DNA of 64,000 nt from Pavona decussata (GCA_977016875.1 CDRNST010000007.1:2108001-2172000); one strand, 5' to 3'. Positions 1,663-50,837 are shown, counted from the first letter of the stretch. A program made the numbers and translations. Notes: generated by a model from the sequence alone, not told the origin.

Positions 1663-2923
1663 ATGTCCAAGATGAACTCTCCAAAGATCGTTGCTTTCTT
1701 TTATCTCTGTGTTATGATTGCCTCCTGCACAGTTTTGGCTCAGTGGAATTGCCCTTTCGACTACCGCTGTGGAAAACGAGAGGTATGACCCACTAATGTC
1801 TCCGTTGTAACATTTTTAACACCTCTGTAAGGTTTCCCATGGTGAAGCTAGCTGAACATTAACTGCAACTGTTCTGCACAATGCTCTGAGCAAGCTAAAT
1901 GTAAAAGGCGATCTGAACTTGAACTCAACGAAAGTAGAAGATCTTTTCCTGTTATGTTTTAAGCCACTCGAGTGTCGTTTAAGAAACGGTTAAGGCAACG
2001 GTAGTCGCCAAAATAGGCTTATTCGATCTAAAACTCCGAAGAAATTCGCACATGTACGTTATGGAGTTCACATTTTTGATAGTTCAGTTGTTGAGTCTTA
2101 TAAAACCTTTCGTTAACTTCATTTGACAAAATGGCTTATTAATTCCACTATAAAAAGCATCTTGACAGGAAAAAGGTTACCGCTGTTGACGAAACAGAGA
2201 ACAAAAAAATTGATAGGGCAAACGTTAAGTAGCTGTGTAAGCTACCTTTTAAAAGTACACAATAAACAAAAGTCACCAGATGATTTTTTTTACAAGCGAC
2301 TATTTCAAAGCTAAGAAGGATAATTATCTTCTTATGAATTAAAACATACTCAAAACATCAGGAGAAGAATGAAAATCATCATTTTGGCTGAAAACGTCTT
2401 GATAGCTTATCGACTAAGGACACTAACCTTTCATACTGACACGAATTTAGGTGGACTCTATCAGCGCGAAACGAATTATAGAACAAAAAAAACAATTCAA
2501 ACTGAAGAATTTTAAAAGAAAGTTTTACTTTTTTCGGCGTTAGAAAGAAATAGATTTAAATTCCTTGTTTTCCATTTAATTTCTATAGCTGTGAAAATAT
2601 AGCTAATTTAAACTGCGCAATGAATTGTAAAAATTCGACGTCACTGACAGCCAGTACTAGTTGGCTCCTCCGCCGTCCTTAATGAAGAAAAATATTCGTT
2701 GTTAAAAGAGATAGAAATTAGGATTGAGAGTGTTTTTTCCCCGCAGTTATCCGATGCTAAGATGAATGACGATGCGATTTCCAAAAACCTCATGGATCGA
2801 CTTCGCTTGCTGAGAAGCTTTCGTCCCAGTCCTGACGGAGGAAAGCCAGTGAAGGCAGAGCGGAGACTGGGTAACAGAGCAGACACTGCAGACCTCAAAG
2901 GGTCATGGGCATGGGAAGAATGA
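1663..2923 (+). CDS. Prepropeptide P1, join(1663..1782,2747..2923), 98 aa; predicted peptide pQWNCPFDYRC-amide
   Basis: Exon 1 is MSKMNSPKIVAFFYLCVMIASCTVLA|QWNCPFDYRC-GKR-E with donor GTATGA. Acceptor TTTTTTCCCCGCAG precedes phase-0 exon 2 LSDAKMNDDAISKNLMDRLRLLRSFRPSPDGGKPVKAERRLGNRADTADLKGSWAWEE*. AATAAA at ~2973. Both exons are conserved in the copy at 9229. Confidence 0.9.
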
Positions 2924-3001
2924 CGATGACATCGAGAATCAAGACTTTGCTGATAAATCTAAATTATAAAGAAATAAATTAAAGAGACTATTTGAATACT
3001 G

Positions 3002-3225
3002 ATAAAAAACGATTTAGAGAAACATTTCAAAAAGAGAATTAACGATAGTAAAACAACATGACGTTTCGACGACTTCATGTCGTCATTGTCAAATGAGTAA
3101 AATGGAAATAACGGAAAGGCATATTTATAGGTATTGAAAGTGAGAAAATAAATTAGCATGAAAGCATTCAGTCGAAGTCGTTGAAACGTCATGCTGTTTT
3201 ACTATCGTTAATTTTCTAGTTAAAA
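3002..3225. mobile_element. Palindromic insertion in the 3' region of P1, flanked by 13-bp direct repeats
   Basis: Inverted arms AATTAACGATAGTAAAACAACATGACGTTTC... (~3038-3213). TATTTGAATACTG occurs at 2989-3001 and 3226-3238. The insertion is absent from the P2 3' region. Confidence 0.6.
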
Positions 3226-3551
3226 TATTTGAATACTGTAATACTACTACTAATAATAATAAGATTGCTATCAATTTCTCAAGCGCTTTGAAAATAAATT
3301 TGCCTATCTATATATTTACATTGCAGTTGCTTATAGTCTTATATATTTAGAAGCCGATGATTTTATTTGTTGTTGTTGCCGTGAACTATATTAATGTACG
3401 TACATGTGAACTTACTCAGTTAAAAAGCGATTAGTTTGAGTTTTTGAGTTTGGGCAAAAGTAAAAGAGCCCACAAAACCGAACCTATAGCTGTTAAGTAA
3501 TAAACATGGCAAGGATTAGGGAGCATCGTGCTTAGAATTTTGGTCGAAGAA

Positions 3552-47729: not shown

Positions 47730-48125
47730 AAGTCACACTAAACGAGCGTTAGTGGCCCACACGACCTGTTGAGCTTGACCGTATTTCTGTAGCATGAAGG
47801 GACTAGGAGTATTTCTGCTCCTCCCCGGCTGCGTTGCTAGTTCATCGCAGGCTTTTTTTTAAGTAGAAAACTCTTGAGTACCCATTTATACACCTGGGTA
47901 CGATGAAGAGAGACAATGTGGAACAAAGTTTCATGTCTGCGGAAACAATATGACCATGTTGAGAGCTGTATTTCTACTCCTGCCCAGATGCGTTGCTAGT
48001 CCATCGCGCAATCGCAGGTTACCCCTAGCAGTATGTCAATGGCACCCATTTGTACACCTAAGGGTGAAGAGAGACAACGTGGAACAAAGCTTCTCGTCTG
48101 CGAAAATAACGTGACAATGCGGAGA
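47730..48125. mobile_element. SINE-like interspersed repeat fragments (two partial copies)
   Basis: Duplicated GTATTTCT.CTCC...GCGTTGCTAGT.CATCGC...ACCCATTT.TACACCT...GAAGAGAGACAA.GTGGAACAAAG motif. Confidence 0.55.
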
Positions 48126-49779
48126 ACAGATCCTCTGGGCCACCAGTCGAAAGTCGGTTTAAAGTCTTCCCGGTAATTATAAGCACTACAACTAGTAATA
48201 ATCAAAGATTAATAGGGAGTGTGTCCGATGATCTCGATCCCAGGCTCTCTCCCCTTTGTGATGTCATTCACCCCTGCAAAAAATCTTCAGGGAATGCCAG
48301 ATACGCGTCGCAAGATCCATCCATTCATTCACGGCAATCAACGTTGTCCTATACAATCTCGACTCCAATCTGTATTAGGATTGCGTTCTTCCTACGTCGA
48401 ACGCTATAATTACCTACGCCGTTGTGGGAGTTCTGAATTGCTATTTTTTGCATTAAGTTTTGCGAAGTTAATAAAAAATAAATAAAAATATGTTGAAAAG
48501 CAGCAATATTTCAAATACAGAGTCTATAGAGAAGATTATTGGAATAAAATTTATTCATTCAGGTAACGTAGAAACCTATACTTGTTGGACTGAGGTTTGA
48601 AAAGTGGAGAGCTCGATTCATTTGACTTTTAAGGACATTTTAACGTTTCGAATCTTTTCTAAACATTATCGGAATTACATTTTAAGCCCTCTTTGAACTG
48701 AAGACTTTTGTTTTTGTTCGTTTTTTTGTAATAATAGCATCTAGGCGGCATATTTATTAAGTTAGATTAAAATCAAACTTTATAAATCTCCCGCAGTTGC
48801 ATCCTGTGGCTTTGTTCCTTTTTAGGTATCATAAATTATTCAAATTGCAAATAAGTAGAAATATTCTTAAACGCACGTGCTTAACTACTCTGCAAAATAC
48901 GATGTTTTGTCTTTCTTAACGACTGGCTCAACTTTGGTTGTACATTTACTTTCTTTTGAAAAAGATCAGTTGATGAGCTAGAATGAGTCGTCGATGAAAG
49001 GACCGTATTTTGATTTTTTTTTTATCAATCAATAAACATACGATTGTATGGGAAGCAGAATGTGGTTCAAAAGAAAAAAATTACCCTGTCGACCCACATG
49101 ATTGAATAACTGCCTGTTTATCCAGAGGCGCTTCTTGAAAGATTTATTATTATTTCTCTCATTTTGCCCTGAATGTCATAATCCCTCCTAAACTACCGTA
49201 ATTTTTAATAGCCATTATTTTAATTGACAACAGAATGTTCCGCCAGTTTGGTTAAAAACAATATTATTTAATAAGAAAACGCATTTGTCAATACCGGAAG
49301 ACTGTCTGAAAATGTTCGGGGAATTATGCCGAATTCATAGTTAGGAAGTCGTAAGTTAAGGGTGCTTATTGCCCGTTTGAAACACACATTATAATAAATT
49401 AATATCTGAGATCCGAGTGATTTTTAGTTCGTTGAAACAAAAAATTTCTATTGTGTTTTATATCACAAATTTCTTTATCAAAAAGCTGCCACGCCTAGGA
49501 ACTTTTTTTGCAATCAAATCTAAAATTTTACTCATTTAATAAGCCGATTGTTTTTGCGTTTAAAAGGCAGGTGCCTGCACCGTAATAAGAGTGTCAAATA
49601 GCTTCGTAATTGGCGAAACTATTAAAGGAGTTGTTTTCCAATTATACAATGCTTAATATCCATGATTACTCCTCAAAAAACATTTCAGCCAATAAATAGA
49701 CACAAGACTGTTGCTGTCGGCTTTACTGATTAAAACGCCCTTTGAAACTCATTTGTAAAAAGAGGGAACGGCAGCAACG

Positions 49780-50837
49780 ATGGCTTCAAGACTTCTTATC
49801 GTGTTCGTGGTGTTGGCGGCGATGATTGAATTCTCTGGTCGTTGTAAGGGTCAGAATATGCGCTGCGTAATGCATCCATGTGAACGTCAGGTTGGAGAAG
49901 TTAAAATTTTATTCTCTTTCCTGATTTTGTTTTTCAATTCATGTTGCATGCTTGAGCTGAGGGTTTCATGTTTCAAACTTTTGTGCCAAAGCGCAAGCTA
50001 CAGCTGATGAATCATCAGAGAATTAACTCTGCAATGTATGTTAAAGTGCTAAAGTGAACCGATGAATTTCCCACTGAGTGTTAGCCCTAGTAAGGAAATG
50101 GGAGATTGCACGAGGCAAAGGAAAAATATCGAACCTCGGCGGACCGTTGCTCTACCGACTGTGCTACGAGCTACGAGGCCAGACAGGACGCAGACTGGGT
50201 TAATTCTCTGCTCCATCGTTTGTATCCTTGGTGCTAGCGGCACAAGATTTGTTTGTACCCTTCGTAAGCTACAACTGGTTTGTAGTCTAATGTAAACCTT
50301 GATTTAACTAAAAAAATATAGAACAGAACCAAATCAAAGAAACTAACATAGTATGAAATAAAATAAATATAAAAGATTATAAAAAGCAATATGATCAGAT
50401 GTAAAGCAAAATAGGTCCAAATAACGACATTTAATATAAAACAAATTTAAACTTTAGTTCTTAAATGATGCTTATTCAAGTCTGGTCATTTTTCACTGAA
50501 GTGAATTTGGTTAATGTAATTTCTACCGCCACGAAAGTTCTTGAAAAATGCTGAAATATTCGGAGTTACCTGTAGATATCGGTTATTCACATTTTCAAAC
50601 CTTTTCAAACAGCCGTTTTGTCACAAGCTTTTATTTTTGTCATATTTGAAAGTGAACAAATTAAAAGAAGTTTATGTCACTCAACGTTCTTCTTACCAGG
50701 ATCAAGGGGATGACGCGGATTCTTTTGATCGCGGAGCCCTGGTACGGAGCGAATTCAGACGCAATATGAATATGAAGTTGGGAGATTTTCTGCAGAGTTA
50801 CAAACAACTGGAAAAAGATGTCCCGGATGAAGAATAA
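49780..50837 (+). CDS. Prepropeptide P14, join(49780..49890,50700..50837), 82 aa; ring peptide QNMRCVMHPC
   Basis: MASRLLIVFVVLAAMIEFSGRCKG|QNMRCVMHPCERQ, GTTGGA donor, TTCTTCTTACCAG acceptor, exon 2 DQGDDADSFDRGALVRSEFRRNMNMKLGDFLQSYKQLEKDVPDEE*. Divergent paralogue of P8/P9/P13. Confidence 0.9.

Follow-up and report, generated by a model that had tools for sequence, protein, structure and literature searches.

A tandem cluster of two-cysteine peptide precursor genes in Pavona decussata

We analyzed a 64,000-nucleotide stretch of the genome of the coral Pavona decussata (C7:2,108,001-2,172,000, on a contig of a 602 Mb assembly; 37% G+C, no runs of N), hereafter the window, and this revealed that it holds most of a ~89 kb tandem cluster of very small two-exon genes encoding secreted precursors of two-cysteine peptides. 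First exons were recovered by a scan for ATG-started open reading frames (ORFs) with a hydrophobic N-terminus, and the 14 found in the window, g1 to g14, are all intact, with start, frame, both Cys and donor kept. Each encodes a signal-like hydrophobic segment of 21 to 26 residues, directly followed by a single peptide copy; the residue after the predicted signal is Gln in 13 of the 14, with Lys-Pro in g3. In every first exon the part after the cleavage point has exactly two Cys, lying in a stretch of 10 to 17 residues, and a phase-0 GT donor is found 2 to 5 codons past the second Cys. Eleven distinct peptides are encoded, with a C-X4-C ring in the genes referred to below as the core family, X5 in the g1-type genes and X9, X10 or X11 in g3 to g5. 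A sequence-only reading of the window had described 14 first exons on one such plan, and its counts of exons, Gln starts, Cys, donor distances, distinct peptides and ring sizes were all reproduced by the ORF scan.

All first exons lie on the plus strand except that of g5. The g1 exon (1663-1782) encodes a signal and QWNCPFDYRC-GKRE and ends at the donor GTATGA, and g2 (9229-9348) specifies the identical peptide. They are followed by g3 (13680-13796; signal and KPACGNGWNRMFGDCLS, ring X10, without Gln), g4 (19688-19795; signal and QKCAGWSIPLGGCVK, ring X9) and g5 (25198-25317, minus strand; signal and QCSDWGTVFTGGKC-RRQ, ring X11). The core family includes g6 (30502-30615; signal and QYRCMFTGCG-GKRE), g7 (34090-34206; signal and QQSPWVCLYRPC-KRQ), whose exon 1 lies 495 bp upstream of that of g8 (34701-34811; signal and QLKCTLHPC-TGQ), and g9 (36724-36837; signal and QLSCTLHPC-GEK). 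Further downstream are g10 (40776-40889) and g12 (42860-42973), both with the g6 peptide, g11 (41871-41987; QTWKCIFTRCG-GKRE), g13 (45829-45939; signal and QMGCTLHPC-EEK) and g14 (49780-49890; signal and QNMRCVMHPC-ERQ). Orthologues of g3 and g5, both intact, and of g14 are present in a second coral, here species B, whose assembly (ERZ26692669, loci L018/L017/L016/L015/L007) contains a 47 kb syntenic stretch with ~86% DNA identity to the window.

Gly-Lys-Arg or Gly-Arg follows the ring in g1, g2, g3, g6, g10, g11 and g12, whereas g5 and g7 have only RR or KR at this position; the G-K-R/G-R processing signals proposed for the cluster from sequence alone were therefore present in 7 of the 14 genes and missing from the other half. 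Core-family first exons have, in essentially every member and in every coral seen (the window plus loci L007, L011, L012 and L027-L037), a Cys at -3 relative to the point where the signal is predicted to be cleaved (..C-x-G/A|Q..), which may fit the -3/-1 rule or may mean that real cleavage occurs elsewhere than predicted.

The cluster had been proposed to span ~50 kb, and its tandem organization was upheld while its extent was not, since four extra g1-type genes (QWNCPFDYRC-GKR) lie upstream of the window, at window coordinates of about -37,850 to -9,374 (C7 2,070,152-2,098,626). Three of these four are on the minus strand, and one has Tyr for Phe (QWNCPYDYRC). The genome has six g1-type copies, all on this contig, and the first exons of the cluster, within the window and upstream of it, number at least 18. 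An unrelated ORF pair (MYLAAEGPSG.. and MQVTTIVLFF..) recurs three times among the upstream g1-type genes.

Second exons of four types

Second exons were found by paralogue comparison, six-frame profile search and conservation in a related species. The window contains 11 of them, each of 45 to 67 amino acids (aa), each behind a pyrimidine tract and AG, and each in phase 0; their products are hydrophilic tails rich in acidic and basic residues and without Cys. The earlier expectation of one second exon of 45 to 67 aa per gene was right as to size and wrong as to number: g4, g7, g10 and g11 each lack a private second exon, and that at 44517 (44517-44660, plus strand) is without a first exon.

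The second exons of g1 (2747-2923, plus strand, 58 aa, predicted junction) and g2 (9687-9851, plus strand, 54 aa) are of the g1 type. That of g3 (14771-14974, plus strand, 67 aa, predicted) starts with Gly-Arg, and the amidation/cleavage site of g3 would thus span the exon junction and be made by splicing; this exon is 92.5% identical to species B versus ~86% in its flanks, and its open frame is kept. For g5, we propose an exon at 22799-22951 on the minus strand (50 aa, behind a pyrimidine tract and AG), located by ORF composition and acceptor and then checked for conservation; its frame is kept in species B at ~90-92% identity, while a sliding-window conservation analysis, which was not discriminating, failed to single it out.

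The remaining second exons, all on the plus strand, form the core family with two subtypes. Subtype A comprises those of g6 (30916-31059) and g12 (43257-43400), both of 47 aa, the latter being the sole subtype-A acceptor downstream of g10 and g11. Subtype B comprises a shared exon (35396-35539, 47 aa), which serves g8 and, by best match, g4 and is a candidate for g7, those of g9 (37479-37622) and g13 (46578-46721), also of 47 aa, that of g14 (50700-50837, 45 aa; its species B orthologue is protein P0001) and the orphan at 44517. The genome has five g8-type (subtype B) second exons, all of which lie inside the window. The core profile (A3/A7; motif NE[FY]RRN..[KR]L[AS][DE]..R) matched seven window second exons at 79 to 97 bits, and nothing else in the window scored above 8 bits. 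The exon-2 core is predicted to be helical with low to moderate confidence (predicted local distance difference test score, pLDDT, ~71 over the core).

No similarity was detectable between the four types when the core A7 profile was compared with the g1-type, g3 and g5 second exons, all three comparisons being null, and a single superfamily of all second exons was rejected. Since the g1-type, g3 and g5 second exons resemble neither the core nor each other, common ancestry of the whole cluster would be argued only by shared design, intron phase and intron position. Only g4 and g6 to g14 are tied together, by the second-exon family of g6 to g14 and by the shared second exon of g4. The description of the cluster as one expanded family accordingly stands for the tandem expansion and falls for the single family.

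Two first exons probably spliced to one second exon

Read-contig evidence covers window positions 30300-36299. Contigs of X1, X5 and X7, each from a different study, cover exons and not introns, whereas X16 covers the region evenly, behaves as DNA and has no joint anywhere in the stretch. The g6 junction 30615|30916 (GT..AG) is joined in contigs of X1, X5 and X7, and the X16 contig runs continuously through the g6 intron. The g8 junction 34811|35396 is joined in X7 only and is spanned by no DNA contig among those listed. Thus, two of the junctions foreseen from sequence alone were recovered in RNA-like contigs, one from three studies and the other from one. No RNA coverage was seen for g7 within this interval. 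A loose end at 30912 in X1 was considered as an extra upstream exon and rejected, as it belongs to an unrelated locus on C250 with 18 bases in common by chance.

The contigs of X5 and X7 that lie on 35393/4-35548 run upstream into the end of the g4 first exon, and the join is in frame and uses exactly the donor predicted for g4 and the acceptor of exon 2. The 30-mer at the g4 first exon (window 19764-19793) occurs nowhere else in the 602 Mb genome. At 3 of 156 bases, the second-exon portion of these contigs departs from 35396-35548, a difference at the allelic level between assemblies of this species (98.1% identity), and it is nearer to 35396 than to any of the four other copies; moreover, no common 31-mer able to produce the join by mis-assembly was found. 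Because the g4 end is unique, the nearest match is 35396 and mis-assembly lacks a 31-mer, we read the first exons of g4 and g8 as being spliced to one and the same second exon, that of g4 over ~15.6 kb across g5, g6 and g7. A private g4 second exon was sought by tblastn and hidden Markov model (HMM) searches and rejected, as none was found in the window, in two other assemblies of the species or in species B. The g4-type exon ends in ..GTA CAG (Val-Gln) in X5 and in ..GTT AAG (Val-Lys) in X7 and the assembly, which is an allelic difference at the last residue before the g4 junction; the species B exon likewise ends in Val-Gln.

A further joint in X7, at 34802|35394, has an inserted GGAGAAA that is the end of a g9-type first exon and was placed on the g8 second exon at ≥95% identity. 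It could be an allele, a product of gene conversion, or a g9-like first exon that is spliced to the g8 exon. Transcripts of at least g6, g8, g4 and a g9-like gene exist and are spliced precisely where predicted.

Just downstream of g6, window positions 31500-32100 form a very high-copy repeat, with a summed contig depth of ~50,000 in the DNA run versus 25 to 140 nearby; it also appears in the RNA-like runs and is probably a transposable element.

Segmental duplications and replacement of the peptide-coding patch

Self-comparison of the window revealed recent segmental duplications with 86 to 93% identity: 27082-28627 corresponds to 37970-39502, 29239-30756 to 39530-41031, and 35261-37964 to 44381-47063. 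These duplications, which species B lacks, gave rise to g10 to g13, the orphan exon 2 at 44517 and relic first exons. The last pair is 93% identical and has its breakpoint inside the g8 intron, which is why the copied second exon at 44517 stands without a first exon. Two relics of g7-like first exons are found on the plus strand, one at 36087-36245 with a frameshift caused by a 10-base insertion and one at 45122-45394 with ATG changed to CTG and an 11-base insertion. Truncated copies of the g6/g12 unit are represented by g10 and g11.

While g6, g10 and g12 are identical across the peptide patch, g11 differs from g6 at 12 of 26 positions inside it and at 8 of 239 outside (Fisher p = 4 × 10−9). 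Since the changes in g11 are concentrated in this way, new peptides appear to arise through replacement of the peptide-coding patch alone.

Conservation of the cluster in species B and purifying selection

Gene order in species B is the same as in the window: two QWNCPFDYRC genes, g3, g4, g5, g6, g7 plus g8, one g9-type gene and g14. There, g4 is again without its own second exon, g5 is again on the opposite strand, and g7 and g8 both stand before one single second exon. For ten of the window first exons, an intact orthologue is present in species B, and several peptides do not differ between the two species. The ratios of nonsynonymous to synonymous substitution (dN/dS; Nei-Gojobori, eight orthologous pairs, small numbers) were 0.69 for the signal, 0.29 for the peptide with its processing site and 0.48 for exon 2. 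Judged by substitution pattern, the peptide region is clearly not evolving freely and appears to be under purifying selection. Among the eight g1-type copies of the two species, the QWNCPFDYRC-GKRE part differs at 2.9% of sites versus 18.3% in the intron, and seven of the eight encode the identical decapeptide.

The core family in other corals

When 1.84 billion representative proteins were searched with a profile built from the seven second exons of g6 to g14, 13 matched, of which 12 were retrieved, all short and unnamed. Exons were searched separately, and the full-length evidence comes from the natural proteins P0013 and P0023; P0013 is the product of a full-length spliced transcript with the peptide QRYECIFTAC. 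A follow-up search led to the Oculina patagonica 'hypothetical protein ACROYT_G023836', whose junction is the same (..CKRE|ELED..). At the O. patagonica locus there are five pairs of first and second exons, all one-to-one, four of which are annotated as two-exon NCBI gene models with products of 68 to 84 aa. The core family was found clustered in O. patagonica and in two other coral assemblies; six core-family genes were counted in another coral assembly, and a scan with subtype A alone found further members on 12 metagenome contigs.

Across corals, subtype A has the form pQ-x-Y-x-C-[ILM]-[FY]-T-x-C followed by (G)[KR]R-E (pQ, N-terminal pyroglutamate), with the dibasic site right after the ring kept, and subtype B has a C-x-x-x-P-C ring. 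The sequence F-T-G-C is confined to the g6 type of P. decussata, other corals having F-T-T/A/S/Q-C. The O. patagonica genes related to g4, g8, g9, g13 and g14 have KR beside the ring.

The sequence-only reading could assign the peptides to no named family, and the searches agree with it. Pfam gave no match for any window exon product or for the homologues P0013 and P0023, the protein collections offered no name beyond 'hypothetical protein' in O. patagonica, and the peptide strings had no relevant match in the searchable papers, the two matches obtained being unrelated (a Moon-based camera and plant cyclotides). Word-based protein searches gave no candidates with the subtype-B second exon and only a self-match with the g4 first exon, and an exact look-up of the ORF of the g5 orthologue returned no record.

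A gene with HYR domains lies beside the cluster, at window 56131-58123 on the minus strand. Its two HYR exons (57121-58123; Pfam E of 1 × 10−18 and 2 × 10−20) are adjoined by a cysteine-rich ORF (56131-56367) that looks Sushi-like by eye and has no Pfam match at E 0.01. Since the O. patagonica cluster is likewise flanked by an HYR-domain gene, this arrangement suggests conserved synteny.

Proposed processing and function

From the predicted precursors, the following course of maturation may be proposed. Signal peptidase would expose the N-terminal Gln, which glutaminyl cyclase would turn into pyroglutamate (pGlu), and the two Cys would close into one intramolecular disulfide ring. At the KR, RR or G-K-R/G-R sites of g1, g2, g3, g5, g6, g7 and g10 to g12, convertase and carboxypeptidase would release the ring peptide, and PAM would amidate it where Gly precedes the basic site. 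The ring peptides would then act as intercellular signals, probably through peptide receptors, while the helical conserved part of exon 2 might serve as a pro-region, for example in sorting or folding, or as a second product. Duplication and replacement of the peptide-coding patch would generate new ligands.

Because the precursors share the layout of anthozoan single-copy precursors and P0013 has neuropeptide prohormones as its feature-space neighbours, we favour the reading that the cluster encodes lineage-specific signalling peptides, neuropeptides or hormones, to which we give a probability of about 60%; as between hormone, neuropeptide, toxin and pheromone, the evidence leans to a signalling peptide.

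Several observations weigh against this reading. The peptides themselves are predicted from sequence and their receptors putative, and an array that expands in tandem while changing focally in its peptide patch is typical of toxins and antimicrobial peptides as well. The amidation signal is present in only half of the members, and g4, g8, g9, g13 and g14 have no basic pair adjoining the ring, which leaves their mature products uncertain. Cleavage further upstream than predicted would leave three Cys. When corals are compared, conservation of exon 2 equals or exceeds that of the ring peptide, and exon 2 may have its own function. As to expression, we infer that X1, X5 and X7 are RNA from their lack of intron coverage, their records reading 'RNA? 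(a guess)', and the junctions of g1, g3 and g5 as well as the use of g7, g10 and g11 are predictions.

The most serious rival, which we nevertheless consider unlikely, is that the peptides are exported defence molecules (venom, deterrent or antimicrobial) of gland cells or cnidocytes. A tandem array with recent duplications would be expected of such molecules, the focal replacement of the mature peptide between a nearly identical signal and flanks is a conotoxin-like mode, and the six near-identical QWNCPFDYRC genes suggest selection for dosage. However, orthologous peptide regions are under apparent purifying selection, several of them being unchanged between species, and the order of peptide first and pro-region last, with pGlu and in some cases an amide, is that of anthozoan neuropeptide precursors; the feature-space neighbours are, in addition, all neuropeptide prohormones. 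Typical cnidarian toxins have a signal, a pro-region and then a larger Cys-rich toxin, which also speaks against defence. If the peptides were defence molecules, they would be very small cnidarian toxins or antimicrobials of a new class.

It is improbable that the main bioactive product, or an equal second one, is the helical segment of exon 2 (..PLNEYRRN-LMRLSEMLR.. / ..NEFRRNRKIKLADLLRSYKRR..), with the ring as an accessory. Its core is the most conserved part across corals, is predicted to be helical and in many members lies between RR and KR, and several members lack a cleavage site beside the ring; yet the flanking KR is gone in some homologues (P0013), the ring plan is kept in the g1-type genes, g3 and g5, whose second exons are unrelated, and the g1-type ring peptide is far more conserved than its exon 2.

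We regard it as very improbable that most members are decaying duplicates or chance ORFs around one or two functional genes. Such decay does occur in the cluster, as seen in the two clearly broken g7-like relics, the truncated g10 and g11, the orphan exon 2 at 44517 and perhaps g7, which lacks RNA coverage, but start, frame, both Cys and donor are preserved in each of the 14 first exons, the ten intact species B orthologues have low dN/dS, and within the 6 kb of the cluster that was sampled four different genes yielded spliced RNA.

Least probable of all is orthology of the core peptides to a bilaterian cyclic family (CCAP, vasopressin/oxytocin or GnRH/AKH/corazonin): the likenesses, none of which comes from an alignment, namely F-T-G-C in g6 and CCAP, a C-X4-C ring as in vasopressin and the feature-based similarity of a pGlu peptide, GKR and associated peptide to GnRH/AKH, are outweighed by the restriction of F-T-G-C to this species, by the lack of any Pfam match to GnRH, corazonin, AKH or hormone-5/neurophysin, and by ring positions and lengths that differ, the ring of vasopressin being at the N-terminus (residues 1-6) with an amidated tail and a neurophysin domain. 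In line with this, the peptide systems of Cnidaria and Bilateria appear to have undergone independent expansions (PMC11087051).

Within the signalling reading, we tentatively propose, as a possibility to which we give less weight, a variable-first-exon system, in which a number of first exons, differing in promoter, signal peptide and ring peptide, would be spliced over up to ~15.6 kb, past intervening genes, onto a constant second exon. Promoter choice would pick the cyclic hormone that is secreted, and the arrangement would be a way of diversifying ligands in a family that would be undescribed. If true, this would add an undescribed cyclic peptide family to the coral peptidergic repertoire, and second-exon sharing, if regulated, would be an unusual mode of ligand choice. 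We know of no precedent among neuropeptide genes for diversifying ligands by variable first exons together with patch replacement.

Coral physiology, including spawning, settlement, polyp behaviour and symbiosis, is thought to be largely run by peptide signals, and only a handful of linear peptide families have been catalogued in stony corals. The locus contributes as many as 11 candidates for disulfide-cyclised peptides, whose masses can be predicted exactly, one of them encoded by six genes, and these are short enough for synthesis, for screening on orphan coral G protein-coupled receptors (GPCRs), as well as for larval and polyp assays. The shared second exons also mean that exon-by-exon annotation misses how the genes are built.

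Comparison with known systems

The single-copy design had been held to set the cluster apart from classic anthozoan precursors, and this claim fails, since the Antho-RWamide, -RIamide, -KAamide and -RNamide precursors are likewise single-copy, with the peptide right after the signal (PMC7523074). They share with the cluster a length of 65 to 90 aa, one peptide after the signal, N-terminal Gln, in part of the cluster also Gly and basic residues followed by Glu, an acidic/basic tail and several paralogous genes per species. In contrast, the known anthozoan single-copy peptides are linear and end in RWamide or similar, the cluster peptides have two Cys, and half of the cluster members lack the amidation signal of Antho-RWamide-type precursors. 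The Antho-RWamide-2 gene of this genome (QGLRWGRE..; L010, G000:C123:4547417) is one ORF without an intron after the peptide. Two further loci, L008 and L009 (G000:C45:940678 and 944135), have QGFRWGR followed at once by a stop and no upstream ORF, and look like chance matches. The RWG motif is found in no cluster member, and homology to the Antho-RWamide precursor was rejected, with no alignment by BLASTP and a probability of 3% by hhalign; the tails are alike by eye only (..DYLRRK..FDDS.EK.. in Antho-RWamide versus ..NEYRRN..FDDSRQEK). Three LRWamides activate Nematostella GPCRs (PMC11087051).

Among cnidarian candidate neuropeptides, only the cyclic FRamides of Cubozoa and Scyphozoa (CXGQMCWFRamide and CXSPMCWFRXamide) have been described with a presumed cystine ring (PMC6909153). 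Their C-X4-C ring size is that of the core family, but their ring is N-terminal and followed by a WFRamide tail, whereas the ring of the cluster peptides is C-terminal, behind a pGlu extension, and has no WFR tail. The precursor of the Nemopilema cyclic FRamide holds several near-identical copies, in contrast to one copy per precursor in the cluster, and cyclic FRamides have been reported absent from Staurozoa and Octocorallia (PMC6909153). The cluster family belongs to Scleractinia, and a later survey of Hexacorallia does not contain the word 'cyclic'.

The prohormones of GnRH, AKH and corazonin share with the cluster a signal, a pGlu peptide, G-K-R and an associated peptide, but their peptides are linear. 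By language-model features, P0013 is nearest to the GnRH, corazonin, AKH, spexin, bombesin, CCHamide and galanin prohormones (score 0.93); this nearness to GnRH/AKH-type prohormones is one of design and not of ancestry, a lead rather than homology, and the GnRH, Corazonin and Adipokinetic-hormone signatures of Pfam gave no match. As to vasopressin/oxytocin, Pfam detected no neurophysin domain, and the second exons are without Cys. CCAP, of the type PFCNAFTGC-amide, has a C-X5-C ring and lies internally in its precursor, in contrast to the C-X4-C core ring directly after the signal, and FTGC is a feature of the g6 type of this species.

The cluster has in common with conotoxin superfamilies a conserved signal/pro-region, a focally replaced Cys peptide and tandem expansion. 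The mature conotoxin stands at the C-terminus of its precursor, and the cluster orthologues, in contrast to conotoxins, appear to be under purifying rather than diversifying selection.

Clustered protocadherins and UGT1A likewise have several variable functional first exons, each presumably with its own promoter, before a shared exon, and the parallel here is formed by g4 and g8 on the 35396-type exon and by the g7 plus g8 layout kept in species B. Unlike those systems, the cluster is tiny in scale, with two to three first exons per shared exon and with the first exon encoding the whole ligand; most cluster genes, and all five in O. patagonica, are one-to-one, and regulated first-exon choice is a proposal only. 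The single-copy precursor design was already known; the novelty lies in a coral-wide family of ring peptides that has no name, in its expansion and in its shared second exons.

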